Assembly: GCA_964035545.1 (NCBI GenBank)
Contig: OZ037766.1
Coordinates: forward strand, 1,860,001 to 1,924,000
DNA length: 64,000 nucleotides
Reading direction: 5' to 3'
From: Bugula neritina
Lineage: Eukaryota > Animalia > Bryozoa
Within the stretch, counting starts at the first letter, position 1, and every line of letters starts with the position of its first letter. Positions 1,525-64,000 of the stretch are shown here, one piece after another. The position numbers and the translations under genes are program-made. Under the pieces are notes generated by a model. That model did not search any database. It had not been told where the DNA came from and worked only from the letters and a program-made list of their open reading frames with translations.

Positions 1525-3056
1525 GGATAACTCCAACAGATGTAGATGTTGTGGAGCTTCATGATTGCTTCTCGACTAATGAACTGATAACTTATGAGGC
1601 ACTCGGGCTATGCCAGCCAGGTTAGTATTCTCAGCCACTGATTGGCTGTTCACTCTCCATACATCTTGCTGATTGGCTGTTTAGTCATACAGCTTGTTGA
1701 TTGGCTGGTTGTTATAACATACTATTGTCTGAGTTGAGAACATTTTTATTCACTTGGCAGGTGAAGGCGGGGCTATGGTAGACAGAGGAGACAACACTTA
1801 TGGTGGAAAGTATGTAGTGAATCCTAGCGGTGGACTCGAGTCTAAAGGTCATCCTCTTGGAGCTACAGGTAAGTCGGGCTGCATCAATACCCCCCTCCTT
1901 TATTCTATTATCTAGCTTCAGAGTACTGGTTATATCGACTGAACTTGTTAACACAGGACTGGCCCAGTGTGCTGAACTCACCTGGCAGTTGCGGGGAGAG
2001 GCTGGCAAGAGACAAGTACCTAAGGCTAAGCTAGCCTTACAACATAACATTGGTTTGGGTGGCGCTGCAGTGGTGACTCTGTATAGACTGGGCTTCCCCC
2101 AAACAAGGTATGTTTTTGAGGGTGGATAAGTGTGTCCCTTGATTTAAGGATTGCTACAGGCTGCATATATTGAACAGATATACTATCCACTTACTGTAAT
2201 AATGCATTAGTATGTTTCTTCTGGTATCACAGTTATGTAACACTTTAGTTGTGTTCCTAGTTCTAAGCAGGTGGAGGGAGGGGACTTTGAATGTGCTGCG
2301 ATGTTCTCGGAGCTCTCGAATGTCTTGAGAAAGGTGGGCCTCAGTTCTCAGTCTACAGTATAGTTCTTAGTATATAATGTAGTCAGCTGGTTTCATAGTA
2401 AAGAATTTAGTTTAAATTCTTACTATGCCATAGTATGTATGTACATAGTTGGAGTTCCTAAGATGCTGTTACAGGACGGGGCGGCTATTGTGAAGCGAGT
2501 CAAAGGAACTTTCAGCTTCAAGGTAAAGAACTCGGCTGGTCGGGAAGCTGTTTGGTTTGTCAATTGTAAAACAGGAAATGGATCCGTAGAATGTGGGTCA
2601 ACCCGTAAGTAGCTCTCGTTGTGATTTTTCTTGCTATCACTTTTATGATATGAAATGTACCTAGTTAGAGTTACTATGGGATATAAATGTATATTGTGTT
2701 TGCAACGTGAACTTCTAACTAATATATACTGCTGCTGGTATTTAGAGAAAGCAGATTGCACCATCACCATGTCGGATAGAGATCTAGTAGATTTACTCAC
2801 TGGAAAACTCAATGGACAGAAGGTAAAACAACTCCCAATATGTTAAATAGTACAGTAACTTCATGAGCTGTAAAAGAAGCAGTTGCCGTTAAAATATTTC
2901 TTTAAATAAAACTTACCTTTTCCACGAGCAGTCGTTGAAGTTGTGTCTCGTGTTTTGCAGGCGTTTATGCAAGGAAAGTTGAAGCTGTCAGGTAACATGG
3001 CTCTGGCCACTAAACTAAAGGAACTGCAACCTTCAGCCCCGACCTCTAGACTGTGA
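1525..3056 (+). CDS. SCP2: Sterol carrier protein X / SCP2 (SCP2-type thiolase C-terminus + SCP2 domain), 3' portion; 5' exons lie outside the window
   Basis: Frame-consistent GT-AG exons 1525-1620, 1761-1868, 1957-2107, 2261-2333, 2475-2604, 2746-2822, 2961-3056. Translation includes [53 protein letters not shown] (SCP2-thiolase motifs), [12 protein letters not shown] and [19 protein letters not shown] (SCP2 domain), ending in PTS1 SRL*. Confidence 0.96.
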
Positions 3057-3200
3057 ACCTCCTTACCTCTAGACTATGAACCTTCCCACCTCTAGACTGT
3101 GAACCTTCCCGACCCCTAGACTATGAACCTTCAGCCCCGACCTCTAGACTGTGAACCTTCCCACCTCTAGACTGTGAACCTGCTCACTTCTAGACTATGA
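3029..3200 (+). repeat. Seven tandem 23-28 bp units spanning the SCP2 terminal codons and stop
   Basis: Units end in TCTAGACT(G/A)TGA (CCTAGA in one) at 3056, 3079, 3102, 3126, 3154, 3177 and 3200. Confidence 0.9.
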
Positions 3201-4297
3201 ACCTGCAGGTTACTGCCAGTCAATGAAACGTGACTGCTAGGAGTGGTACTGTTACCTTAAGATGTATTCAACGTATTCAATCAGACTCTTGGTGCTACTT
3301 GATTTGTTGATTGTAAATGATTATTTTACTGTAGTATATTATTTTACCATTCTAGTGATATTAGTTTATTTCATTATATATAATAATTTATTAAAGTAAT
3401 ATAAAATAATGCTGCAATATATTATGATATTGTATTACATTCTATGACATATTATTTAACCAGGTTAATGAGACACTTTCACTACTAACTATATTACTAT
3501 TCTTCATATTATAATTGTATATTTAGTATTTCCAATCATTGTCTGCCATTCTATATCTCTGAAATATACCATTTATCTACAATCAAGTTATTCTCTTTAG
3601 TTAAGTTTTACTCTAACCTCGCTCAAGGCAGCAGTCAGGGAGTATGACTTAGAATTTTATGTCAAATGTTTCATTCAGGGGATGTCACCAAATGCATTCA
3701 TATTCACTGTTTCATTTGGTTCATAACCAGAGCTCATGTTGGAGACAAGCATTTAATGGCCACATAATGCCTGGTATAGGTTTAGTTGTTGAACAGATTT
3801 CAGCTTAGACTATATGTTGAGTCATTCCTGTGAATATAATACCTTCAACTGTATTGAGAAGTCATGCTGATCAGGAATAAATATTATACATTATATTTAT
3901 CCGAGGTGCATTCAGAATCATGTATAAAAGGTGGAGAATAAACTAGAAGATATGAAATAAACTAGAAGTGACCTAGCTGTGAAGATAGTAAGTAAAAACC
4001 AATCTGGTATTTATAAAAACAAGTGGAATCTATACACAATATATTAGTACAGTACGTAGTGTAATATCAATGCAGTAATATATTAAATATATATCTCCAT
4101 AATGTATTTCATCTATTCTAAGGAACCATATAATAGACTATATAAATATAATTCTAAAAACTAAAACTTTCTGGAAAACGGAAAATGGCAAAACAACATT
4201 AATTTGTCCTAAATCTATGGAAGAAGTATAAAACAAAAAACAACAGTAAAATTAACTACAGTTCACTATACTAGTAACTCTACTAAGAGTGATGGTC

Positions 4298-46500: not shown

Positions 46501-49500
46501 AATCAACTGATAATCTGCAGAAGGTAATCAACTGATGATCTGCAGAAGGTAATCAACTGATAATCTGCAGAAGGTAATCAACTGATAATCTGCAGAAGGT
46601 AATCAACTGATAATCTGCAGAAGGTAATCAACTGATAATCTGCAGAAGGTAATCAACTGATAATCTGCAGAAGGTAATCAACTGATAATCTGCAGAAAGT
46701 AAAACATCAAAAAGTCTCAAAGTCACTGAAATAGAAGATTCAGAATTAGGAAACACCGAGAATTGGTACCATAATTAGGATTAACTAACAGAACCTTTAC
46801 TGGAACCAAGTCTAATAGGCTTCAATACTTCCCACAGCCAACACTTGTGAGATCTGCAGATCAACATTTGTGACAAATATTAGGCCCAAAGAGTTTTCTC
46901 AGGTTACGTTGACCCTTTTACAACTTTGAACTGCGCAGCAAAACGACAACTAAAAGCAGTAGCAGCTACTAGCTGCTGTTTAGGGCAGGCATGTAAAGAT
47001 TTGCTTAGCATGGGTTGATAGTTTATGGCCTGGGATCATATAGCTTGGTTTCACAAGCAGACAACTTTCCACGTTACAAAGCTCTGCTGGAACTAGTGCT
47101 ATTTCAAAACACTGCACGGCAGAGCTAACTGCTATGGTGAATCAGCTAGTTACCCGAGCCATCACCTATTCACTGCACTGAAGGTATGTAAACCCCACTT
47201 CAAGTGCACTAGGTTAACGAATGTGCCCAACACTGGATACCCAGGAAGATGTAGGAAAGTGAAATTCATAAGTTCTGTCAGGGAAGTGATAGTATTACAC
47301 AAGGCTTGTACTCAAACAGGGTATTCCGTGCAGTGGAGAGTGAATCAGAATAAACCTGTCTGACCATGTCATCTCAACTGCGTCAAACTTACTGACTGAA
47401 TAGACAGGACCGACAACTGGTAACTAGTAACTGGTAACTAGTAACTGGTAACTAGTAACTGGTAACTAGTAACTAATAACTAGTAGCTCACAACTAGTAA
47501 CTAATGACTAGTAACTAATGACTAGTAACTGACAACTTATTACTAAAAACTACTTGGCAATCCAAATTGTGATTCACACCACAATACAAATACGCAAGAA
47601 TATAGGATGGAAACATAAAGGCATTTCCTCATAGATATTTCAACATTTAAATTATAAAATACATATTTTAAGTGTACCTAACTCTATGCTATATGAAATA
47701 ATCAGGTGAGAGATGACTTTCAAAATAATCCTGCAGGTGTTTTGGTATGGCGCCAGTGTTAGCTGATAGAAGTGGTACGAAAAGTGGTCAGTTTGAAAAT
47801 AAACAACTGCTAGAGTGGCATAAGTCACGGATACATTACTTAATTCCTAATTCTTCTACACATATTTTAATATTATTGTAAAGACTAACCTGACTGAACC
47901 ACTAACATAACAATCTCCACTCACCCCAGACAGTCTGTGTTGAACTCTGCAGTTAGTCTTTACTCCGTCGTCGAGCAGCAACTGAACCAGCTGTTTGTTC
48001 TTATTCTCTAAGGCTATGGAGAGAAGACTCCTTTCCTGCCACAAACAACCAGTATAGTCCAGAGTACAACTTAACTTATACAGTATAGTCCAGAGTACGA
48101 CTTAACTTATACAGTATAGTCTGGAGTACGACTCAACTCACACAGTACAGTGTTGAGTACAACTTGATACACAACTAACAAAGGACGGTTTAGAGTACGA
48201 CTCAAAATATTTGGCCACATCATACTCTAAAAAGCAGCAGATTATTAAGAGTTATCATCTTTTAGGCCGAAAAGCTGTATAACAGACGCATGACTGAATA
48301 TAGCAAATATTACTCAAAAGTAAAGTGAATTTATGCAAACAAATTGCACAATCTTTAAAATGAACTAAGAATTCGCATGCATGGGTGTATACTAGATTAA
48401 AGACTCAGTGAACAACACACGAGACATATAATCACAAATCTGCAACATATTACATGAAAAACAAAGTTAAACAAGTCCAACAACCCAGCAGATCATGATG
48501 AGTTTCAAATTCAAAGAAAATTGCAAAACCACACAAAGCCATCAGCACTTTCAGCCCATTTAGTTTGTTTTGATATGAACTTTAGTAAGAATGCACATGT
48601 CTAAGTTATTTGATACCCCAAGAGCTTGTGGGGCATGTGTTGAACAGCACTTGTAATGTTTAAGTTGAAAAACAAAACTTGAAAGTTTGCCATGATTCAT
48701 AGATTTGCCGGGAGGAAACAGTCTGCTAATACTGACTGGGTTATAATTATTCTGGTCTAATGCAATTAGTAGTCAACTGCAACTGGCCATCTATTTATAG
48801 ACTGGTCAGGTTAAAAATAGTCATCAGGTAGACAGAATAGGTATAATCACTGTAACGGCTTCATTATAATTAAAAAATATATCAAAGAAATGCATCAGTC
48901 AGACTGTGAAAAACATGTGGGGATCAAAAGTTGATCCAGTGAATGGCAGGGTTGTTTGCTACTTGTTAGCAGACAACGGGATGTGCCAACAATTTGCATA
49001 AATTTACACTCAGCATCCAGAGCTAACACCAGGAGCTGACAGAACCTGGCAGACTCACAGGAGGTGACGAGAAAGATACGACTAATAATACTGTGAAGTA
49101 ATCTCCCCTGACTTAAGTTGTGTTTATACCTCTGCTGAAAAAAGTGCCGAGTTTCAGTTAATAACACTCGTCCGGGTACCCCTTTATAGTTTTACAGAAA
49201 CTCGGTAAAATCATATTGAGGCGGAAGCTTACTTTCTAAAAGTGAAATCTGACTTGTTTATTCGCTATTTGATGCCCTTTGAAAATGTCGTGAATTAGCG
49301 AAGTTGACAGCATAAAAACGATAATCGAGAAGGCGTAGGAGATATAATTATTAACATATAAGTACGTCTTCTAATCCCCATAGTCATAACTAAATAACGA
49401 TGTGTACAAGGAGTTATTACTCCTTTTGAGTATTATTCTGAACTCGGCTGATTAAGTTATCACAGTACAAACATTTTTACAAGTAGCTTTTACAATGCAA

Positions 49501-51953
49501 TGCAACTTGGGGAAATTTCAACTCGGCCAAATTGAATTTCTGACTGAAAATCGTGAAGGTATAAACGCAGCTTTAGTCATCCCGAAAATATTCCCATAAA
49601 AGTTAATTTTTTCCTTTAAACTCAGAGCAAGTGATAATAAAGCTAATCCTGTAGGTGTACAACCACTAATAGCAACAGAGAGTGAGTCACTAACAACAAG
49701 ATGTGACAGCAGAGTTGTATGAGTGACAAGGCAGAGCAGGTGCTCCATTATTGCCGATGGTGACACAACTCTTATAGAAAGTCCATCACTACAGATAAAA
49801 CACAACAACTCACTATAACATGTGGTTCTTGTTACTACACCGAGAGGAAGATAATTTGACTAAGAAGTTTACAAGGTGATGTTCCCACAACTTTCAGGCA
49901 GTTTCAATATTCATCACGATCGATGCTGAGATGAAAACCATTTCAATGTATTTCAACTTGTAGTTTACAGTCGGGACATTCAACTCCACTCCAAACCAGG
50001 AGACATAACTCCGGTATAAGAAATAAAGCATTGTCTACTTGGTCACAGGCTACCAACACTTTGTATACACACACAATACAAGCATAGAGGACAACTCCAA
50101 AACATAAGTAAAAATAGCCCAAGTACCTTGTATCTGGAGTTAACAGACCTCATTCTAGTTTCTTCTAGAACTTTTCTAACCGCTACCGTATCATTGGCCA
50201 ACACGCTGTGTATCAGAACCTGCAATAAGACCTCATATGTTTATCTCACTGAGTAACACTAATAGTACCTGCTTCTGACAGCAAAACACAGAGATGGGAG
50301 AATACAACTCCAAAGTGTAATGATTAAATACTGTTATGTCATAGTAGTATAATATTGCTAGAAGAAGCACCAAGTTGGGGGTGACTGAGTACAGTACAAA
50401 TACATAGACATCAGTTTCTAAACTGTACACTTGAGACCCCCAAACCAATGCACTCAGTGACCACCAACTCAATGCTTCTTCTAGCAACTTCTGTATAGTA
50501 GAGCTGGAATATTTACTATAGAGTATACAGCCACTACTAATTTAGTTTGCACGCATGCATTCAGTACACTACCTGCAGCTCATATTCTTAGACTACCTGC
50601 AGCTCATATTCTTAGACTACCTGCAGCCCAGCCTCAACTTACTGACTGATTTTTGTGCTCTGAAATCTTCTGAAGACATCGCAGGACAAACACCTCTTCA
50701 GTGCGCCGAGTGTTAGCCCAGTCGAGCACACTCTCACCGCTGCCGCCACTCTCACCGCTGCCGCCACTCTCACCGCTGCCGCCACTCTCACCGCTGCTGA
50801 CACAGATAGAGGTGACGCTGACCCAATTCCTGAGCAGCTTACAAACCATAGCGAAGTTTCCTGCAGACACAGCTTGGTGTAAGGGTGGGTTGAACTTCCT
50901 CACCAACTCCTTCATAGAACCTCTGCACAAGTCCAGCACACTCGTCCCAATCTACACGGAGAGAGAAGTATCAGTCCCACAATGCACTGGTAGTAGTACT
51001 TTGCATTCACACCATATTAATGAGGTCAGTCCCACAATGCACTGGTAGCACCCTCACCTTATTAGTTATTGTTGCGTCAGCCCCACAATGCAGCAGTGCC
51101 TCTGTCACCAGGTAATTGTGAGCCCTGACGGCAGCGTGTAGCGGTGTCTCCCCTTCCTGACAACAGAATAGTAGAGTCAGCACATGTCTGTGTACAGTTC
51201 TGTAGTACGGGGCTCACCCACCCCCCCCCTCACACAATCTGTGTAGCTTGAGCGAACAGTAGTGAATCTAATACTGGATCGGAAACACAGAAGGAAATGT
51301 AGTTTTTAAGAAGTTTTCCAGCTGTAGCCTTATTATTATTCAGAGAGTTAAGAGTAGAACAGAGTTAGTTCAGTATTAGAATCTATGAGTTTAACGCCAG
51401 AAAAGTTGAAATACGTACATCATTTTGCTTGTTGACAAGCGCCCCCTGTTGGGCCAACACATAGACAGGGGTGGGTAACTCCCGGGGGAACACAGATAGC
51501 CTGTGTAACGCGGTGTTTCCTTTCTACAAAATCATATGTGATGACATCACTTCCTAGATATATTTCCTATAGTGTAAGTACACAACCAAATCTAGAGCAA
51601 CATATTTTAGCCTCAATTTTCAATTTTAAACACAAAATCTCTCGACATGAACACTTTTACCCGTCAATACAATGTGATTCATTCATCTGATGTGAAATCA
51701 GCAAATCTCAAGCAGTTCAATAAAGTGACTTTCAACTGCCACTATCAGCAGGGTTTACAGGTTTTACACCTATTCCGTGAGAAACCTGAGTGTTTGTATC
51801 GCCCACCTTGTCTATCCCTCTATTAACATCCTTCTGTTGTAACAGTAGCCTCAGAGCATCGGCAGACAGATTTATCTCCACCTGCTTGTCACTGGAGTCA
51901 CGACTATCAAATACTTCTATCAGGAAGCTGTCCATTGATGTCTGACTGTCCAT
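43554..51953 (-). CDS. Ankyrin-repeat protein, exons 1-7 (~414 aa if joined to 15601-17972)
   Basis: Phase-0 GT-AG exons 51807-51953, 51419-51523 (KGNTALHRL), 51058-51156 (EGETPLHAAVRAHNYLVTEALLHCGADATITNK), 50643-50951 (PPLHQAVSAGNFAMVCKLL), 50127-50219, 47925-48035 (SLLSIALENKNKQLVQLLLDDGV), 43554-43664 (HLSIAQLLWHYG). A probable non-coding upstream exon ends at 52247. Confidence 0.85.
46453..46700. repeat. 25-bp minisatellite CAACTGATAATCTGCAGAAGGTAAT, ~10 copies
   Basis: Visible array. Confidence 0.95.
47414..47535. repeat. 14-bp tandem repeat AACTGGTAACTAGT, degenerating at the 3' end
   Basis: Visible array. Confidence 0.8.
48050..48165. repeat. 31-bp tandem repeat, ~3.5 copies, next to the acceptor at 48036
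   Basis: CAGTATAGTCCAGAGTAC(A/G)ACTTAACTTATA units. Confidence 0.8.
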
Positions 51954-52589
51954 TGATGTCTAATTGCAAATCAATGAGTTGTTTAACCAAATTAGTCTTG
52001 TTTGATGTCATTTTAAAAAGATACGGAAATATATGAATAAATTTAAACTGGAAAGTAATGAATGCAATCACTACACTCAAACAGTATATTTCAGTAGATA
52101 CTGAGAAGACTTCACATTTTCAATAGAAGCAACATCAATGTTCTGGCTTACAACAATTTCATCAAGTTTACAAAACAAAGCCTGAACTACAATCACTTTT
52201 ATTACATAATAAATTTACACATGAACATGGAAATAATACCACTTACCTAAAGCGGGCTAGCTGACCTTGTATATTCACATGGGGCAGCAAATACCACTAT
52301 ACCACATGTCATAACTACTGCTGCTGCTACTGCTGCTACTACTACTACTGCTGCCTATTATAACTATCCACTTAAGCAAATAGCAACCTTAGCGCTAAAA
52401 CATTCACTGAATACAATGCCTGTCAATATATCTCAGCAAATGTAAAGTTTTCACTTGCTGTCAAAAGAGCTGAAATAATGTCAATACAAATACTGTATCA
52501 ACAATTTGAGTTCAAACAAATAAAGTCAATTCTTAGTACAATAGCACCTACAATGTATTATAATACTGTGCTATATATTACTATATGCT

Positions 52590-52995
52590 AGCCAATATAT
52601 TACATATTATGCACTATGTATTACAGTATATTACATACTATACACTATACATTACAATATATTACATACTATACACTATATATTACAATATATTACATAC
52701 TATACACTATATATTACAATATATTACATACTATACACTATATATTACAATATATTACATACTATACACTATGTATTACAGTATATTACATACTATACAC
52801 TATACATTACAATATATTACATACTATACACTACAATATAATACATACTATACACTATATATTATAATATATTACATACTATACAGTATATATTATAATA
52901 TATTACATACTATACAGTATACACTATAATATATTACATACTATACAGTATGTATTATAATATATTACATACTATACAGTATACACTATATATTA
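52590..52995. repeat. 31-bp AT-rich minisatellite TATATTACATACTATACACTATATATTACAA
   Basis: Visible array; explains ORFs 52585-52929 and 52616-52867. Confidence 0.9.
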
Positions 52996-53612
52996 TAGTT
53001 ACCAAGGCAACAGCTATGAATATAACAACACTTGGAACAAAGAGGAGAAAGAATAATGTAAGGTGAGGTTTAAACTTGAGAAGATTTAACCAAGAACAGA
53101 GCAAATATTTCATGGGAATGAAGTAAGTAAAAGTTGCTAGTGATCTGCCAAAGAACCTCAACAAAACCGGCATTGTGTTGGTAGAAAATCTACGTGTTAG
53201 TGTGATCGAGGAAATGACATGAGAGACCATCACATCATTAATTTGATTGGTTAAACGTGAATAAATACTCACCATTAATAACTACTATAACATACTTGGA
53301 AGATAAAGTTGTTAGACTGAGATACTCACATCGGAGTCACTATGTTGTAACTAAGGGTAAAACTGAGACCTAAAGATAATTTTTCTGCATCTATTTTACA
53401 ACATTTGGCTGTACAAAACATTCTAAAATAGTCATTTACAACTTATTTAGTATAAACATATATACACAGCTATACTGGCCAGCACTGGTCTGTAAAGATA
53501 AACAGTCAAATTGTTAGTAAAAGTCCCCTTAGGTTCACCAATCATCATCACAGGAACAATGCTTCTTACATTAACGTACACATTACATCTAGCTTCCTAT
53601 AGGAGTTGTCTT

Positions 53613-55167
53613 CTATATAACCGGAATAGACGGAATATAGTCCCGGGAATTGCAGGCTAAAGCCATGAAATGGGATGAGCTCTACAAATAGGTAGATGTG
53701 TAAGAATTGTCCCCTCTTACTTCAACAGTCATGTATAAAATAACTGTGGAATGCAGAGTTACCTTCCCATGTAATGAGTGTGAAGCAAACGATAATCAGT
53801 AGTAATAAATATACTGCATGTAATAAAAACCAACTCAAGAACCAACTTTCCAAAATATAAGTGACTAAAACATTACAGAAACTTTTTGAATACTTCTGCT
53901 ACTTCCAGAGATGTTAATAGAGTTCTGTTCACAAGAAATTTTCATTCTGTTTACTCACTATATTTCTGTAGCATTGAAGATATTTTTGCCATCTGTTTTG
54001 CAAAATTAAAGACTTGCTAATCTTAACCAACACGCTGTCATGTAAAATATATTCTATTACTTAGGATAAATCATCATCTCTCAAATATCTTCTCTCTTGA
54101 ACAAACACATTTTACTGTCTCTGATACATGTATGCAGATTAGACATAGCAAATTATACAACGTGTAGGGTGGTAGCAGAAGGCCTCCGCTGTTGTCCAGA
54201 AAGCAAGTAGTTAGGACTCAAGCTAAATCAAGACAAGTACATACAGAGAAGAGGAGAGAAAGACATACCTGTGCGGTGTGTAGTGTAACCAGTGTATCTC
54301 CGAGCTGAGTAATAGTAAACAGGCTGGCTCTGATCTTCACATAAAACCTGAGGAACAAACATACAAGTAATAGCTACAGAATTTACACAGCTTTACCGCA
54401 ACTAGAATAAAACATTACGCTGTGTGCTACCTTTCACGCAGTTTCAACACTGAGTGGTGAATTGTAATAAAGTTAATATTAAATTGTAACAAATATAATA
54501 GCCGACAATTAAATTATAATATATAAAGATGAGATAGTCACATGACAAGAGATAAGAGCACTGATTGGTCAGCTAGAATTACTCACTTAGCCGGACATCT
54601 GATGATAGCCACTCGAGACTCAGAGCTAAACTTGATGATGTCAAACGTGACAGCCCCTCCTAACTACAAAGTAGAGTTTAAAAGTTACAAAATGAAACTA
54701 AAATCTACTTAAAAATAAATTTCAATTAACAAGAGGGAATAAAAGTATAACACAACATGAGCCTAGACATCCAAACTGAACTCTTCTCAATGGTGTGGAA
54801 AATTGGAGAATAAAGTAACTATTTCAAATTTTCTCTAATAGGCTATAAAAGTCATACATACTGTTCCAAACAGCGATCTCATGGACATGTTCATCACATG
54901 CTTCAATGCTTTGGCTGTAGCGTAAAGTCTCTGAGTACTATGAAGTATTCTAAAAACAGTATGGTCATGTGACTAAATGTTATATTATTACTACTTGCTA
55001 TTGTTAATCAGTTTGTGAACAACCAGAAGTGAAAAGAGAAGTTAGACATACATTTCCACCTTTAAATATCTGTAAGGAAGTGCATTTAACTTCGAAACTA
55101 TTCTTTTGAATTTGTATTTGGGATCTTCATTCACCTGCTGGCATGAATCAGCATTTTCATCTGCCAT
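53613..55167 (-). CDS. RPP14: Ribonuclease P protein subunit p14 (Rpp14/Pop5 family), 142 aa; not recoverable from the ORF track because the exons are short
   Basis: Exons 55052-55167, 54862-54949, 54587-54663, 54269-54347, 53613-53681 give MADENADSCQQVNEDPKYKFKRIVSKLNALPYRYLKVEIILHSTQRLYATAKALKHVMNMSMRSLFGTLGGAVTFDIIKFSSESRVAIIRCPAKFYVKIRASLFTITQLGDTLVTLHTAQSSSHFMALACNSRDYIPSIPVI*. This is colinear with RPP14 motifs as I recall them (YHYMKV, DLFGE, LDIL, AILR, VKLWSSL, LLALSGNSR). A possible exon 1 ending at 57000 would add MVHK in frame. Confidence 0.9.
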
Positions 55168-56999
55168 TTTGTGTACCTAAATATTATTTATAATGTCCAA
55201 CAGGTAATGGCAATAAATTTGTAGTTCACATCATTATTTTTAAAACCAAAATATATATATAATTTCACATGTAAAAACATTTATTTATAAAATAAACTTT
55301 TCAAACTGTTTTACATGAATCTAACACATTTATAGCACATATATAAACATATAATGTGTGCTATGAGCTATGTTATTTACCCAGGAACTAATGGAATTAG
55401 ATCTAATACTAAAAGGAAATCTATTTCAATCCAATTTACCAATCCCCAGCACTGAATAGGCCGATAGGTTAACTTGGTTGGTATGGCTGTATACTGACTA
55501 GATTTCTTTCATATGAACTAGAAATCTAAGATAAATCAGATACCAGAAAGGTATTAAAATAAACACCTTTGTGAGCACATAACTCCATAATACATTTTTT
55601 TTTATTTGATATTCATACGATGTCAATTATATTTTGTCTCACATATACACATTTGGTAAATAAATATACAGCAAAACTAAATTGAAGAGTTGCTTTAAGG
55701 AATTTTAATTCTTAAATTAAGTTCTTGGTGTTCTCTGCTAGGATATATGCAGCTACCAAAATAAAATCTAGCCTAAATTTATTTCCCCAAAGCTAATTTG
55801 TTTCAGAATCTATTCTTACCAGTTTAATAATTCAATTCTTAAAAAGAGAATATCATAATAACTGGGGCCAATCAGCCTGCAGTAAAAACAATTAACTTAA
55901 TGATTGCCATTGGTAGTTATAAAATACTATTTGATTGAATGACTGTGACATAAGATAAGTTCTGTAATAATAATAACAATAATATACTCACAAGCTTTAC
56001 TAGCCTTCATCTAATTATATAACAATGAGTGCATAGTGACAGCTCTAAGCCATAGTGATGGTATCAATAAACATTAATTTAATACTATCTACGTATCTAT
56101 TTTAAATTTATAGTTACTGTTATACATTAAATTAATACAGTTATAGCATTTAATAATTGATTTAAACTTATTTTCATTTATTTGTATTAAAATTATCTTG
56201 TTAAACTTGAATATCAAATTTAATTATAATTAAAGTTAATGATCACAATTCAACAACTACAAGATAATTTTAATGCAAATTAATCAAACTATATTTAAAT
56301 CAATTATCAAATGCTATAGCTTTATAATTACCGTTAGTGTTAGTATAGCTGTATTAGAGTAAGAGTATATATAACCATTAGTATTAAAATACTTTCAAAA
56401 TAAATAAAAATCTCATTATCAGTGAATCAATTTACTTTTAGTCAATAGCAATATCAATATGAATAATTGAATTTGAATTATTTGAATAATTATACCTATA
56501 AGTATAATAATAATGTAAATGAATTATGAATAGCCTTTCAATTTTCACTTTTACTCATGACTTTCACTTAGTCTTATCATTATTGATTATGACCATCATT
56601 ATGATTATGCCAAGCCCAATGCCAATGGTAATACTCACTAATAGTAATAGACTATCACTATCACTATGACTATCACTATGGTTATCAAATGTAATAAAGT
56701 TATCCTTAGAGTTAGTGTCATTATGATTAAGATAATTCAGATAATCATAGTTATACTTATTATAATCATATTGATATTCGCTATGATAATGAAATTGAAA
56801 TGACAAACTGAAACTCAAAGTGAAACCGAAAGTCAAAGCGAGTCACACTCACTGTCAGTGTGAGTGTCAGTGCAAGTGTCACCTCGTATCGGTATCGAAT
56901 CTGGCATTAAGTATTATTATAAGTATTATATACATTGATTGAGTAGATATTCCTCATCATTTTACGTCGAGAGAGTAATTTTAAAGACAATGAACTCAC

Positions 57000-57160
57000 C
57001 ATGCACTCTTATCACTATATCTCAAGTTAAACTTAATGTAAATGTCTCAACCTGAATTTTCCATTTTGAGTGTTCTTGAACTTTGCGAACGCGTGGAAGT
57101 TGGGAGTGGCACGTGTTAATTTGTTATTGCACCCGCGGGCAAGTTTTATCGTGAATGCAG
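57000..57160 (-). promoter_or_regulatory. CpG-containing promoter and probable first exon of RPP14
   Basis: ATG|GTGAGT donor at 56999; ACGCGTGG at 57089, CACGTG at ~57110, CCCGCGGG at ~57132. Confidence 0.55.
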
Positions 57161-57834
57161 GTAAAACATTTTATGGACTTCCACAGAGAAAGGATAACTC
57201 TTTATTCTAAATTTCGCAACCAATAGAATATTACAATGCAAGATATCTGGGTAGATAAAGTAGCTTTGTTTAACGAGTTGTCTTTTCTTGGCATCAACTA
57301 TTTCTATTGTTGGTCATGGTATCTTTTTTATCTCGCTGCATTTAAAAACTGACCTTAACAAATACCTGAAGATTACACTATTTTGATAACAAGACACTAT
57401 ACATGCTAATATTATTTTATTGCACCACTGTTTTTATACAATACACTATGTACATGCATTCATAAAAAGTAATAATAAATACACAATATGAAAGAGGTAT
57501 ATCAGCGCATCAAAAAGAATTATATAAAAAAATCAAAGCTCTTCAAAAATTAATCATCATAAATGTTAAAGTACTCAGTTTCATTTCATTTTTGTAAAAA
57601 GTAAAAAAACTAAAATTGATAGAAGATTTTTTTTATACATTGCTCAGAAAATTGCATAGCTCCCATTATCTTCAGTAGCTGATATTTGCTCACATTATTA
57701 TGATGACAAACAGTCTGCAGTTTATTTTATAAGACATGCATCAAGCTATGCCTGCATATGAGATGTCTATATTACAACAGCTTATAAGGTTGAGTAAAGG
57801 TATGCCCAGTCTTAAGTTACCACATACAGGCCTT

Positions 57835-57935
57835 GAATGAGTGAGTGACTAAATGAAGGAGTGAGTGAGTGAGTGAGTGAGTGAGTGAGTGAGTGAGTGA
57901 ATGAAGAAGTGAGTGAGTTAGTGAGTGAGCGAGTG
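57835..57935. repeat. (GAGT)n microsatellite in the predicted 3' UTR of the Tae4-like gene
   Basis: Visible; explains the SLTH ORF 57812-58030. Confidence 0.9.
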
Positions 57936-58064
57936 GGTGTTCGAGTGAATGGTGGGTGAGCGCGAGCGATAATAAAAGGCCGAGTGACTGAGTAAATGAG
58001 TGCCTGACTGTCTTCTTCTAGAATATCCAACGATTGCTTATAGATCTTGTTTCTCGCCGAACTA

Positions 58065-61000
58065 TCAACTTGGACAAGGAGAGCCTATCAAAAAATGCAC
58101 CACATACAATTTCAAACGCAAACATAAATCTAGTCTATGGCCTGAATTATTATAACTTTTACATGCTATGTCATATTGTGGATATCAATTATTAGTTGCT
58201 TATTGAGTTTGGAGTTATGTGTTTTTAATTGTAAAAAACACCCTATTCTGTCACTAATTTATGGATTTCAAACATAGTAGGGTCAAACTTGGTAGGGTCA
58301 ATTCATACAATCATTACTTTGGTCAAATCTTTATATTATGACACCAACCTTTACTTGTTGCATATGCATAAAGAAAGAATGTTTGCTAAAAGCAACTTCT
58401 ATAGCAAAAATGACAATACTTATACCTGAAAGTTCCCAGAATTCAATACTGATCTTATGATGCAAGTTGAAGAAGTATCTACTTTTAAAAGGCTTGTCAC
58501 AGTCCCACAATGCTATGCGGGCATCCACTCTGTTTCCATGACTACGGAATGTTAGTATTCTTAGAATCCCTCGCTTCTGGTGTAATTTCTCGAGAATTTC
58601 CTTTAAGCTGAACTTATTTGTAAAATAGAGCTCGGGGCTTTTGTATTTCTGAGCTAAGTAAGGTCCAAAGGCTGTGGTCCTAAATATGTACTGCAGGTTA
58701 TCAAACCCACGTATACTGTCTGCCGATTTGCCCTTACTGATTTCAATCGGCTTGGTCCCCATGCTATGTTCTCCACCAAGTTTGTTAAAGGCTACGGATA
58801 GCCTGAGAGCTGAAGTATCTGCTAGATTAAGGGTTGGATAATGGGCGTCTCCAACTATAAACTGTATCAACTCGTCTCCATAGGCCCCTCCATAATGTCT
58901 GTATCCAGGATATACTTTACTTAGTTCGTGAAATGATGGCAGAGGCATCTAAAATCATGGAGTAGAGTTTGATAGTATAAAATAAAGCCATTCCTGAGAA
59001 AATTTAGCAGCATGTGTTTTAGTAATTTTTATTTAAACTTTCATTGGATGATAGATTGAAGGTTTTTATTTTCAAATAAACAGTATGTTTATGGGCTCTA
59101 TGCTTTAAAAGAGCTGCATGGGTTTTACTCAAGTATGGATATTAGTTGTCATTACAAATTGAAGATGTTTTTGTTGGAAGGCAAACTCTGTAAGCATTTT
59201 ACAACTCAAATCTGAAGGAATGAAGTGTATCATGTAATAACATACATGTTATAGCACCTGTGTGCTATAGCAAACAATAAAGCGTAGCAGTAAGTACGGT
59301 AGTGTAGAAGTAAGTAGTGTAGAGGTAAGTAGAGTAGAAGTAAGTAGTGTAGAGGTAAGTAGTGTAGAGTTAAGTAGTGTAGAGGTAAGTAGTGTAGAGG
59401 TAAGTAGTGTAGAGGTAAGTAGTGTAGAGGTAAGTAGAGTAGAGGTAAGTAGTGTAGGAGTAAGTAGTGTAGAGGTAAGTAATGTAGAGGTAAGTAGTGT
59501 AGAGGTAAGTAATGTAGAAGTAAGTAGTGTAGAAGTAAGTAGTGTAGAGGTAAGTAATGTAGAGGTAAGTAGTGTAGAGGTAAGTAATGTAGAAGTAAGT
59601 AATGTAGAAGTAAGTAGTGTAGAGGTAAGTAGTGTAGAGGTAAGTTCACAAGTTGTAATATTTAGTGGATTATAGAGATAATCCTAACAGATTAAGGTGA
59701 GTAATCCTGTCCACTAATTCTCCTTTAATACTACGAATTAGCCGTCCATCACTAAATTCTTACCAAGGAGTACATATTGTACGTATACATTAGTGTATAG
59801 TATACATACAAGTGTGTATAGCAGGTATACATGTTCATTTATATTTCCTATTAAATATTATTTGTACATCAATTTTTTGTAAAGGATTAAGTCCAACAGT
59901 AACCAAGGTCTTCAGGTGCAGTTTGGGCTTCAATAACGTCTAACAAAGAAATTCGAGGCTTAAGAGAGTCCAACACATTTTTTCTAAACCAAAATACAAA
60001 CTAGCCTTTGGAAAACTGATAATTATGTTATTCTGAAAAAAGGATTATATAATTTCATCACATTATATAGTATTATATTATATGGTATTATCTACTCTAC
60101 TCTACTAGAATGGCATTCACGCTGTTGCGAATGTTTACTCAAGATCTCAATCAGTACAGGGCTAGCTAATAGAAAAACCTCCATTCTCTCTATCCAAATT
60201 TTAAACTGATAATTATAAACCAAAGCTCGGTCATAAACAGAGCCCCATGGATTGACATTGTTTTTATAAAGTCGCAATTTCAATGCTCTTTTATGGGCTC
60301 AAACCTCTAATAAAAGGTGATTTTTGTCTTACAGATAACATCTTCATTCAAACTCAAATCCCCAAACAGACAAATTAATAATCAAAATTAACTTTTAAAC
60401 AAAAGCTTTGTGCCAGCCAAACATGTGACACCCACTGCTATCCAAGACTAATCAATTTTCTTTTTATTTCTTAGAGCGCCAACTTCGAGACTAAAACCAC
60501 ATGATTGGCTGTGAATTAGTCAAACTGTGATTTCCTCCGCCTTTTTTTTAGGTGGTTTATTTGCAACTCTAACATCTTAAAGTTTGAATATGTTTGTTAA
60601 ATGTGCACCCATCATGGTGAATATTAACCAGTATATTATTTACCTTAACTGAGTTTTAAAGAGTAAAGAGAATACAATACAGCATTGAACTATAGGCCAG
60701 GTGTTCCATGTGCAGAGTTTTAAAAGCTGTTTGTTTGTGGATACTAACTGCTTTACTAAACAAACAAGCAACCATGTAGAAATGCCATTTGGTGTGAAAA
60801 GCTAGCCACAAGTATGCTATTGAGTACTCAGCCTATGTAACTATGTACTCAACCTAAGTTGCTATATGCTACAAGGTTAGGTGGCTAATGCCAGATACTT
60901 TCATTATAATATTATAAATGTATGAAAACTTAAAAACTATCAAACATACTTTATAGAAATATACTGATAACTGTTAGTATCAGGTTTGCTAATGAACTAT

Positions 61001-62011
61001 AAACACATTTTATATAGAGTACAGGTAGCACAAGCTAGAGAAAACAGAATTTGTCAACACAACTATATGAATTTGCAGATTTGTATTGATTAAACATATA
61101 TTCTGTAATAATATAGCAAGATACTATATAATATAGCAAGATAAACATACATTATATCATATAGCAATATATTATATCTAAAAGGTTCATAAGGTACATT
61201 TGCGCTTCTTCCTGTACATTACATTTATGTCTTTATGCTGGGTGATTTTCAAAGGTAAAAATAGTGCAAATTACCTTACTATTGTTGTGTAAGATATATT
61301 TTTGTAGAACTAAATCTTTAGGTCAGAAAATTATATTATAAATAATCATTAATTAGGTGTCAAAACTGTTACAAACCAATATCATTGTAGTTATGATATT
61401 ATTATCAAGTTTAAAACTCATAAGATAACAATCGCATTTTAAATCAGTTTAAATAAAAAGGAAAGTTAACCCTAGAGTATATTTGACTTGAAACAGCAGC
61501 TAATTGTTTTCTCTGTATACAATATATTACATATATATTATTTAGAATCTGCATTACTCAACATGGTATAATTAGCATACTAATTAGATGAGCATCTTCT
61601 ACTTTGCCATTTCAACTCTAAACAACTTACAATCTGTGTAAATATGTGATACATACTTCCATTGATGCTTTTAATAGTTTGCAATAAATAAATTCACATA
61701 ATTTAAGGAAAATTCATATAAGATTTACTTCACAACTACCCAAATCATCATTTATAATGTCTATAATGATCATTATACCCATAGTGTCTTAACAGTTACA
61801 CAACATTTTATATACATCAAAGCTTTACCACATGATTATAATATTTAATTTAATATAATAAAATTAGTATTACTTTCAATGTCATAAAGTTGTATTTAAC
61901 ACAGCAGCAGCAGCTGCAACAGCATGCAGTAACATATTATATACTTACCGTGGCCACGATGGTAAAGAGATGTGGAATAATTTGAGTAACTACGTAGCAG
62001 ATTAGGAGCAT
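58065..62011 (-). CDS. Secreted Tae4-family (T6SS amidase effector 4 / dae4-like) protein with substituted catalytic residues, ~201 aa, 3 exons
   Basis: Exon 1 61949-62011 MLLICYVVTQIIPHLFTIVAT (signal-peptide-like, donor GTAAGT, phase 0). Exon 2 58426-58948 (acceptor TTTTAG) carries the Tae4 blocks in order: LPSF..L, DTSALRLSVAFN (cf. NAC.IRMSY.LN), GFDNLQYIFR (cf. GSDKKRYMFR), KRGIL (cf. KQGII), DARIALWD (cf. TGHVTLWN), IEFWEL (cf. ATFWSL). Exon 3 58065-58084 (GSPCPS*) is less certain; AATAAA on - at 57721-57726. Confidence 0.82.
59300..59645. repeat. 15-bp minisatellite TAAGTAGTGTAGAGG, ~23 copies, in intron 1 of the Tae4-like gene
   Basis: Visible array; explains the LPLHY ORF 59230-59649. 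Confidence 0.95.
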
Positions 62012-62117
62012 GTTGACAAGTTGATCCCAGATAGTAAGATACCCTCTCAAACGAATTTATTACCCATAATATACTGTATAGGCTTTATCCTAGCTAAACA
62101 CTATGAGGTTGAAAACA

Positions 62118-62130
62118 AGGTCAAAGGTCA
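62118..62130. promoter_or_regulatory. Perfect DR1 nuclear-receptor element AGGTCA-A-AGGTCA
   Basis: Exact consensus, ~107 bp upstream of the predicted ATG (62011) of the Tae4-like gene. Confidence 0.55.
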
Positions 62131-63516
62131 AATAGTGAGATTACAAAATCAAGAGTGGATAACTCTTCAACTTCAAGTACAGATGAAACTTTTTTATGTT
62201 ATTAGTATGCGAAGCTGATTATATGAAATCAGAAACTTAGTATAATTTAGCATAGATGCATACCTATACCATATACAATATATTTATTATTAGGTATATA
62301 ATCACCTATATGTAATATATATTATTATATATACATTCCTTTCTCATAGCTCATGGATCTCTTTCTGACAGAGCTCGAGAAAGGTTTGAACCCCCTCCCC
62401 GAAGCTCTCTGCCTGACAAACCCCCTTTAGAGTAAGGTAAATAGTGTATTGGAAAAGTTGGGAAGTCCTGCATGTTATTCATAAAAAATATTGCAAAAGA
62501 AGTTATGTTATCCTGAGAAGTTTAACTCTCCCTTCCAAAAGCTAAAATTCCCGAAGACAACCAAAGTACACAGGCCATTGTATCTCTCCATTATTGTACT
62601 TGAAGCGCTAATAATCTGCCCTTACCAATTTTAGCATATAGAAACTTAGAAATCTCTTGTAATGGTATGGATATATACTACCAGAAAATGACAGGAGAGT
62701 TGTGCTACCTTGACTATGAAGACTTTCAGCTCATTATAACACTATTTCAATAGACTAATTTCTAATTTTTATTATACTTGAGAGCTTTTAAAAACATGCA
62801 TATAATATCTATTAAAAATTAAAAAAAATCAGCAAGAGAAAATTGATAATCTCAAAATTTGAAAATGATGTAATCAGTAGCAAAACCAAAACCGTTTGAT
62901 TAAGTAATGTAGGCGAAGAAGAAAATATTTTAAATGTGCGTAAAGTGCTCAAGCAAGAATGAGGTAGAAAAAGAAAACTCAAAAATATACACAAGATGAA
63001 TCTATGACTAACAACACGAATTAAAACTGGCATAATTTTGGTGTCATTGATGTAATACTGAAATATGATTAACGGTCTGCACAAGAGAATATGAAAGTAG
63101 AACAAAATCGAGCACATAGCTGTGTTAAAGTAGAACATTGTTTTAGCTAAACTAGATTAAGTAAATAGTATTTGCTAAATAACACTTTGAGTGTCACAAA
63201 ATTAAAAATCCACAAAAATACCGTATTTGTTAAAGTTGAAGCAAGTGTTGCACACAATACTGAAGGACATTACGAAACACTGGCATTTCTCCACCAGCAG
63301 TTTAAAAGTTGAAACTTAAACATTAACGAGTCTGTGAATAGAGCGTAACTTCTACTGAATTCAACAAAGAGTCACAACCAAAGTATCAGTGTATAAGGCT
63401 AGCTGCGTGAACGCCCCTTCCATATGGCTACCGACTAGAAATACAGAAGCACAGCTAGCAAGGAGGCTTGCTGCCGTTGCTGCTTCCAATTTCGCATACA
63501 AAGATCTCTGCATGAC

Positions 63517-63918
63517 TCATTCATCGATCTCTTCACTGTGCGCAGTCATGAGTTTCCCATTCACATCACCAAAATCCTCCGTCTGATTGGCTAGAACTCC
63601 GGGCATGTCGGCGTCGGGAACCGCCTTGTGTGAGAGCAACTTTCTCTCCATGAGTAACTTCATGACAGTGTCGATATCTTCGCACGGCACCTAAACAATA
63701 TACATGTGTCGGTACAGTGTATACACGTGTCAGTACAGTGTATACATGTGTCAGTACAGTGTATACATGTGTCAGTACAGTGTATACATGTGTCAGTACA
63801 GTATATACATGTGATGTACTCACCAGTGTGTGCCCGTAGTAGTACGAGGAGATGTAATATTCAGAGATGTTTGCTGATGCTATCGGGTCAGACATTTGGG
63901 CAACTATTCCAGCAGTCA
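63517..63918 (-). CDS. CASTOR: CASTOR/GATS-like protein (cytosolic arginine sensor family), last two exons; the remainder lies beyond the window
   Basis: Exon 63824-63918 TAGIVAQMSDPIASANISEYYISSYYYGHTL and exon 63517-63690 VPCEDIDTVMKLL...EEIDE* match the final CASTOR ACT domain as recalled (CGIVAQI..PLAAADISAYYISTFNFDHALVPED.I..V..L). Confidence 0.88.
63697..63812. repeat. 21-bp tandem repeat TATACATGTGTCAGTACAGTG filling most of the last CASTOR intron
   Basis: ~5.5 copies between the donor (63823) and acceptor (63691). Confidence 0.9.
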
Positions 63919-64000
63919 CTACAAATACATGATGTGAAATGTCATTGCAAGTACATGTTGCGACATGTCACAGTGTCATAGCATAATGTAACATGCCACA

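Follow-up and report, generated by a model that had tools for sequence, protein, structure and literature searches.

A Tae4-related gene lacking the catalytic cysteine and histidine in the bryozoan Bugula neritina

The dae genes, which derive from interbacterial toxins transferred into animals, are a textbook example of immunity gained by horizontal transfer, and to our knowledge the dae examples that have been studied are active enzymes. Tae4 is one of the bacterial toxins, a peptidoglycan amidase of type VI secretion systems. In the bacterial protein StTae4, the catalytic triad consists of Cys44, His126, and Asp137, and the alanine mutant of each residue is non-toxic (PMC3695027). In animals, dae genes and an active cnidarian Dae4 have been published: nvDae4 of Nematostella vectensis keeps its cysteine (C63), cleaves peptidoglycan, and kills B. 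subtilis, and its C63A mutant fails to lyse E. coli or to kill B. subtilis (PMC8713801). The same study mentions, in one sentence, a second, uncharacterised Nematostella tae4 homologue that lacks the catalytic cysteine (PMC8713801). Here, we analyse a gene of the "domesticated amidase effector 4" kind found in 64,000 nucleotides of the bryozoan Bugula neritina (the window: assembly GCA_964035545.1, contig OZ037766.1, positions 1,860,001 to 1,924,000). Like nvDae4, it is an animal-encoded Tae4 homologue of bacterial origin with an added leader. Unlike nvDae4, its product has neither the cysteine nor the histidine. By its loss of the cysteine, the second Nematostella homologue, as described, is nearer in kind to the window protein.

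This gene belongs to what looks like a second outcome of toxin transfer, in which phylum-spanning descendants of Tae4 have lost the nucleophile and are yet under selection; in the bryozoan, the histidine was lost too. Our literature searches found nothing on a bryozoan Tae4 homologue, or on a Cys-less Dae4 family beyond the sentence mentioned above. In this literature, we could find neither a description of the bryozoan member as a homologue of Tae4, nor an account of how widespread and how old the Cys-less clade is, nor the further step from histidine to arginine.

The Tae4 fold and its catalytic site

Sequence profiles and a predicted structure make a solid case that the window protein has the papain-like NlpC/P60 fold of Tae4 and belongs to this family. 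Full-length comparisons were made with the B. neritina orthologue EB796_019845 (P0001), and the predicted fold covers exon 2 alone. The Pfam profile PF14113 is matched by all 12 members of our family alignment A1 (best E 1.1e-9), and the paralogue encoded in the same genome scores 32.4 bits, above the 27-bit cut-off. The window protein by itself scores 22.7–23.2 bits (E 1e-4), below this cut-off. When used alone in a phmmer search of the PDB it gave no match, and the Tae4 chains were reached by the family profile of A1 only (E 1.4e-4). The comparison by hhalign of 26 animal with 25 bacterial-type sequences gave a probability of 99.8% (E 3.6e-29) over 158 columns, in a match that begins at the N-terminal LPxF..YP motif and ends at the C-terminal FWE. 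Exon 2 was modelled by AlphaFold with a pLDDT of 87.4 and a pTM of 0.86. The top 11 matches of this model with Foldseek are all Tae4/Ssp1 (E 2e-7 to 1e-5), and its alignments with VIA-align to all nine Tae4/Ssp1 entries have Z of 15.9–17.7 and a root-mean-square deviation of 2.5–3.0 Å over 148–150 residues, the next fold having a Z of 5.5. A search of the ESM Atlas agrees with the Tae4 fold. The likeness to Tae4 and NlpC/P60 proposed in the preliminary description of this DNA is thus upheld by profile and by structure; as for its match to Pfam, this holds for the relatives and not for the window protein taken singly.

The window protein shares with bacterial Tae4/Ssp1 (PF14113; PDB 4HFF, 4J30, 4JUR, 4HFK, 4BI3, 6IJF) the fold, the ordered motifs, and a similar length, and it keeps the non-catalytic Tae4 positions R49, S51, N55, G95, P96, and W148. 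It differs from them at the catalytic site. The segment DTSALRLS aligns with NTCAIRxS, which places Ser46 in the column of Cys44, and DARIALWDC aligns with ATGHxxLWDG, which places Arg144 in the column of His126. Both placements were obtained with a hidden Markov model against the PDB sequences, with a MAFFT alignment of ~140 proteins, and with hhalign. In the two latter alignments, Asp137 is opposite Ser156; the loop is remodelled there, aligns poorly, and is devoid of the bacterial Cys135–Cys139 pair. Because the cysteine and the histidine are both replaced and the equivalent mutants are dead (PMC3695027, PMC8713801), the mechanism of a papain-type cysteine amidase is unavailable to the window protein, which has presumably lost the ability to cleave peptidoglycan. 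The gene had been labelled an amidase toxin. Its residues argue against this label, since it has Ser46 for Cys44 and Arg144 for His126, and alanine at either position is enough to inactivate StTae4 (PMC3695027). No catalytically intact copy of Tae4 was found in this genome.

Two other residues were considered for a catalytic role and set aside. Asp158, a tyrosine in the window protein, was dropped as the third residue of the triad because hhalign and MAFFT put Asp137 opposite Ser156; its column has an aspartate in 51 of the 60 relatives with the histidine and in 4 of the 11 with the arginine. Cys150 was rejected as a relocated nucleophile: in the model it lies on the same strand as position 144, six residues beyond it, and it co-occurs with the cysteine of the C-terminal tail, with which it may form a disulfide.

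The gene also differs from those of bacterial Tae4 by its introns, by its separate exons for the leader and for a tail with a cysteine, and in having neither a Tai4 neighbour nor a type VI secretion context. A search for Tai4 (PF16695) in the whole genome gave no match, and the control genomes were silent as well. The bacterial-type relatives that have both the cysteine and the histidine are found in dense bacterial gene contexts, and one of them (P0095) adjoins Tai4.

Transcripts, introns, and the animal clade

The gene is expressed, and its transcript is spliced together out of three exons (Table 1). We aligned to positions 57400–62400 the Logan contigs of four public runs, which we guessed to be RNA; contigs without introns are otherwise hard to explain. 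Contigs of the runs X5 (2020 study) and X9 (2015 study) join 58948 to 61949, skipping 3000 nucleotides, and 58083/4 to 58425/6, skipping 341. A contig of X2, from a third study (2022), has the same second intron; it is aligned as 58065 to 58425, the 20 intervening letters being the start of exon 3. Read on the plus strand, the skipped segments are bounded by CT..AC, corresponding to GT..AG in a minus-strand gene. Contigs extend to ~57942 on the side of the 3' untranslated region (UTR) and to at least 62017 on the other side. They are 90–95% alike to the window, hence their source is a diverged lineage that is recorded under the same organism name. The splice signals read from the sequence include a donor TCAG/GTATAA at 58426/58425 and an acceptor GATAG before 58084, and they put the junction of the leader and the body in phase 0. 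Exon 2 lies within a minus-strand open reading frame (ORF) of 205 codons at 58331–58948. Splice signals and contigs hence agree with the place, the introns, and the separate hydrophobic leader exon given in the preliminary description, and both junctions that it had set as a check (61949/58948 and 58426/58084) are seen in the contigs. Its depiction of the gene as a bacterial ORF preserved in one exon plus a leader is incomplete, since a third exon, already implied by its own list of junctions, bears the conserved C-terminal cysteine.

To place the gene among its relatives, an exhaustive profile search was made, which gathered 139 proteins (31 at E 1e-30 or better). In the tree, 73 sequences form an animal clade (SH-aLRT 95) that spans at least five lophotrochozoan phyla. 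Its named members are from bivalves (Crassostrea gigas, Dreissena polymorpha, Potamilus streckersoni, Sinanodonta woodiana), a cuttlefish (Acanthosepion pharaonis), a brachiopod (Lingula anatina), annelids (Owenia fusiformis, Ridgeia piscesae, Paralvinella palmiformis), a nemertean (Tubulanus polymorphus), and the bryozoan B. neritina. The nucleophilic cysteine is absent from all 73; alanine is found in its place in 34 and serine is the second commonest residue. All clade members have a cysteine after LWD, where bacteria have a glycine, and this residue (Cys150) is, with His61 and the tail cysteine, one of the new invariant residues of the animal clade. The column of His126 has a histidine in ~60 members and an arginine in 11, among them the sequence of Tubulanus and the two paralogues of Bugula. 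This arginine (Arg144) is invariant in the 11 sequences, which come from at least two phyla, and parsimony requires two changes between histidine and arginine on the tree.

The positions of the introns are also shared. Intron 1 has phase 0 and precedes the Phe of LPxF by five codons in Bugula and Tubulanus and by six in the cuttlefish; in these three animals, intron 2 has phase 1 and interrupts the third codon that follows FWE. The tails of spliced relatives read xPDSxCP, and those of genomic read-throughs, which concern most clade members, read xPGK or xPGE. The latter are the footprint of the same phase-1 donor, GTAAG or GTGAG, across the clade. Since both introns are common to several phyla, the acquisition is older than the split of these phyla, i.e., it took place before at least the bryozoans, nemerteans, and molluscs diverged, and was not a bryozoan event. 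A recent or lineage-specific acquisition by bryozoans is thus contradicted by a clade of 73 members in at least five phyla with the same positions and phases of both introns. The boundary of exon 2 is within 1–2 residues of the bacterial start (consensus MxxLPxF), in keeping with a leader added in front of the old N-terminus. This part of the earlier proposal stands. The idea that the first methionine of the exon is a conserved ancestral one does not, because exon 2 starts with LKLPTW in the Bugula paralogue, LKVPKF in Tubulanus, and KASLPEF in the cuttlefish.

The nearest outgroups of the clade (P0049, P0187) differ again at the catalytic columns: one group has Asp/Ser there, and the second combines Cys with Asp or Ser. 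Their genes are in long, gene-sparse metagenome contigs beside animal-type genes with Stanniocalcin, Hint, and C2 domains, and they are probably further eukaryotic descendants of Tae4. Bacterial and archaeal genomes were scanned for the signature motifs of the family (from A1), and no Tae4-like gene in the genomes covered contained them. At eight Janthinobacterium loci (e.g., 2686–3828), DARIALWDCDVPF occurs in a 380-residue protein unrelated to Tae4 and is nearly the DARIALWDCDKPF of the window. We rejected these matches to DARIALWDCDxPF as relatives, since a short motif in an unrelated protein can be treated as chance when the scan itself searched for that motif.

Selection and function

The gene is under purifying selection. 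The comparison with EB796_019845 gives a dN/dS of 0.106, with 16 synonymous and 7 non-synonymous differences, and exon 2 is 95.6% identical in nucleotides to that of the orthologue versus 83–87% in the non-coding flanks.

On balance, we lean towards the window protein being a secreted, catalytically dead binder or sensor of bacterial peptidoglycan, i.e., a pseudo-enzyme, in an old animal family of bacterial Tae4 descent. The leader exon would take the product into the secretory pathway, a likely link between Cys150 and the tail cysteine would stabilise the Tae4 fold, and the former active-site cleft, lined by Ser46 and the conserved Arg144, would bind the stem peptides of peptidoglycan without cutting them. 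Secretion is probable given the leader, whose best 10-residue Kyte-Doolittle mean is 2.27; hydrophobic leaders are found in 25 of the 33 relatives with long N-termini. The conserved pair of cysteines was also counted toward secretion, because such pairs are typical of extracellular proteins. A role in immunity, in the control of the microbiome, or in symbiosis is plausible. Non-catalytic PGRPs, which have lost their amidase residues, offer an analogy of logic: in both cases an amidase fold would have been kept as a secreted binder or sensor. The PGRP fold itself is unrelated (zinc amidase_2 versus papain-like NlpC/P60), and the likeness is functional only. If the window protein does bind the cell wall, a bacterial weapon became a sensor, a change that has its parallel in the PGRPs with their catalytic and non-catalytic forms. 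The gene is compact, with three exons, a paralogue, and transcripts in public runs, and the active nvDae4 is a ready positive control.

Several observations weigh against a secreted pseudo-enzyme that binds peptidoglycan. The leader has no basic n-region and the window protein alone is under the Pfam cut-off. Most clade members keep the histidine, hinting at some residual chemistry in the family, and a nucleophilic role of Ser46 is conceivable. The transcripts come from runs guessed to be RNA and from a lineage 5–10% diverged from the window. Finally, what we propose on the activity and the binding of the Cys-less clade is drawn from sequence for every member.

A more specific and tentative scenario sees in the family a dedicated receptor. 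An old, intron-bearing, secreted lophotrochozoan family derived from Tae4 would have lost its cysteine at or near its origin, and the histidine would then have become a conserved arginine in a subgroup of bryozoans and nemerteans, producing a receptor for peptidoglycan or muropeptides. The two CASTOR-linked paralogues of Bugula, an animal that transmits a bacterial symbiont vertically, could in that case serve to recognise or tolerate bacteria, not to kill them.

Among the alternatives to peptidoglycan binding, the one that survives best, even if we find it somewhat doubtful, is the reuse of the fold apart from the cell wall, either for another peptide or glycan ligand or in an extracellular structural or signalling role. 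It would account for the differences from Tae4 at all three positions of the triad, for the new invariant residues of the animal proteins (Cys150, His61, and the tail cysteine), and for the age and the diversity of the family, of which this genome has two paralogues. It fits less well with the conservation, around the substrate cleft, of residues common with bacterial Tae4. Furthermore, both Nematostella tae4 homologues, including the Cys-less one, a possible member of this clade, are induced with antibacterial genes via NF-kB (PMC8713801).

It is unlikely that the window protein is a true antibacterial Dae4 enzyme, a peptidoglycan hydrolase with a non-canonical site in which, e.g., Ser46 is the nucleophile. 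A hydroxyl residue is indeed available at the nucleophile position, the fold and the motifs lining the groove are kept, purifying selection is strong, and nvDae4 shows that an animal Dae4 can be bactericidal (PMC8713801). However, the histidine that acts as general base is an arginine, and position 46 is an alanine in 34 of the 73 clade members, hence no conserved nucleophile. The Asp137 loop and the Cys135–Cys139 pair are remodelled, with Ser156 opposite Asp137, and a single change of the cysteine or the histidine to alanine ends the activity of StTae4 or nvDae4 (PMC3695027, PMC8713801).

A decaying relic, i.e., a transcribed pseudogene without function, would explain why the catalytic cysteine and histidine were lost and why the window protein scores below the Pfam cut-off. 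We regard it as very improbable, because no stop interrupts the reading frame in the three exons, the splice sites are canonical, the dN/dS is low with an excess of synonymous differences, the same replacements are conserved in orthologues and paralogues across phyla, and the structure model is confident.

The locus and its paralogue

The window corresponds to 1.86–1.92 Mb of its contig (C2) in a 216-Mb assembly. The best protein match of the gene is the B. neritina hypothetical protein EB796_019845, of 201 residues, which is 96% identical, shares the leader, the body, and the tail, and is annotated without function or family. This orthologue has the same three exons and the same neighbours. 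On its contig (assembly GCA_010799875.2), the gene order on one strand is CASTOR, EB796_019845, RPP14, and an ankyrin-repeat gene, and this contig is collinear with positions 49189–63971 of the window, with a nucleotide identity of 83–87% in non-coding DNA. A Pfam match to CASTOR is found 929 bases past the end of the window, on the same strand. A search of the same genome with the profile of RPP14 (PF01900) gave a match solely at another place on C2, and single conserved exons of the window had no Pfam match. The assignment of RPP14 depends on the collinear contig because these exons are too short for Pfam. Hence, of the two flanking eukaryotic genes named in the preliminary description, both are present in the collinear assembly and CASTOR has its own Pfam match, whereas RPP14 was not re-derived from the exons of the window. 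Its broader claim, that a bacterial-type Tae4-fold gene resides in an animal chromosome, is borne out by the position in the contig, the introns, and the eukaryotic neighbours. Bacterial contamination or misassembly, to which one could relate the fact that the nearest named clusters of the ESM Atlas are bacterial Tae4, is excluded because the transcripts are spliced at two spliceosomal introns, an independent assembly likewise places this locus between CASTOR and RPP14, and the window is 1.9 Mb inside a large contig; in addition, its G+C at the gene resembles that of the flanks, no Tai4 partner was found, and the family motifs were in no Tae4-like gene of the scanned bacterial and archaeal genomes.

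Table 1. Coordinates of the Tae4-related gene and of its features in the window.
Feature	Position	Strand	Remarks
Three-exon coding gene	62011–61949, 58948–58426, 58084–58065	minus	606 nucleotides, 201 codons + stop
Exon 1, ATG and hydrophobic leader, putative signal peptide	61949–62011	minus	21 codons, phase 0, donor GTAAGT; contigs of X5 and X9; same in EB796_019845
Intron 1	58949–61948	minus	3000 nucleotides, GT..AG; skipped in contigs of X5 and X9
Exon 2, entire Tae4-fold domain	58426–58948	minus	174 codons + 1 nucleotide; acceptor TTTTAG directly before the ATG at 58948
Ser46 codon, opposite the Tae4 nucleophile Cys44	58811–58813	minus	HMM, MAFFT, and hhalign alignments
Arg144 codon, opposite the Tae4 catalytic His126	58517–58519	minus	HMM, MAFFT, and hhalign alignments
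Cys150 codon (WDC), invariant in the animal clade, Gly in bacterial Tae4	58499–58501	minus	columns of alignments A1 and A2, clade survey
Intron 2	58085–58425	minus	341 nucleotides, GT..AG, phase 1; skipped in contigs of X5, X9, and X2
Exon 3, coding part	58065–58084	minus	completes Gly, then SPCPS and TGA; bears the conserved C-terminal Cys; sequence read and contigs
3' UTR	57942–58064	minus	contig ends at ~57942 beside a TGAG microsatellite; contigs

The genome contains a second pair of the same genes at C1:7185464–7191985, where another CASTOR-like match is found 6 kb upstream of another Tae4-like gene. We examined the DNA of this paralogue at positions 7189967–7193485 of C1. Its protein is 51% identical to that of the window and also has serine and arginine at the catalytic columns. 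Its exon 2 follows a TTTTAG acceptor and begins with LKLPTW, in a layout that mirrors the window locus, and its spliced form exists as a database protein (P0004). Since this paralogue is downstream of the second CASTOR, the two genes were duplicated as a pair.

In non-coding DNA, the window is 83–87% identical to the NCBI B. neritina contig; the RNA-type contigs recorded for the same organism are 90–95% alike to it. The window genome looks like a different lineage within the species complex, EB796_019845 being the orthologue from another one. Intron 1 includes a tandem repeat at 59299–59645, with ~23 copies of a 15-nucleotide unit (92% matches). The 139-residue "LHYLP" ORF at 59230–59649 is spurious because this repeat produces it. 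A TGAG microsatellite of 26 copies (57834–57939) directly follows the end of the transcript contigs and was passed over as a repeat when they were mapped.

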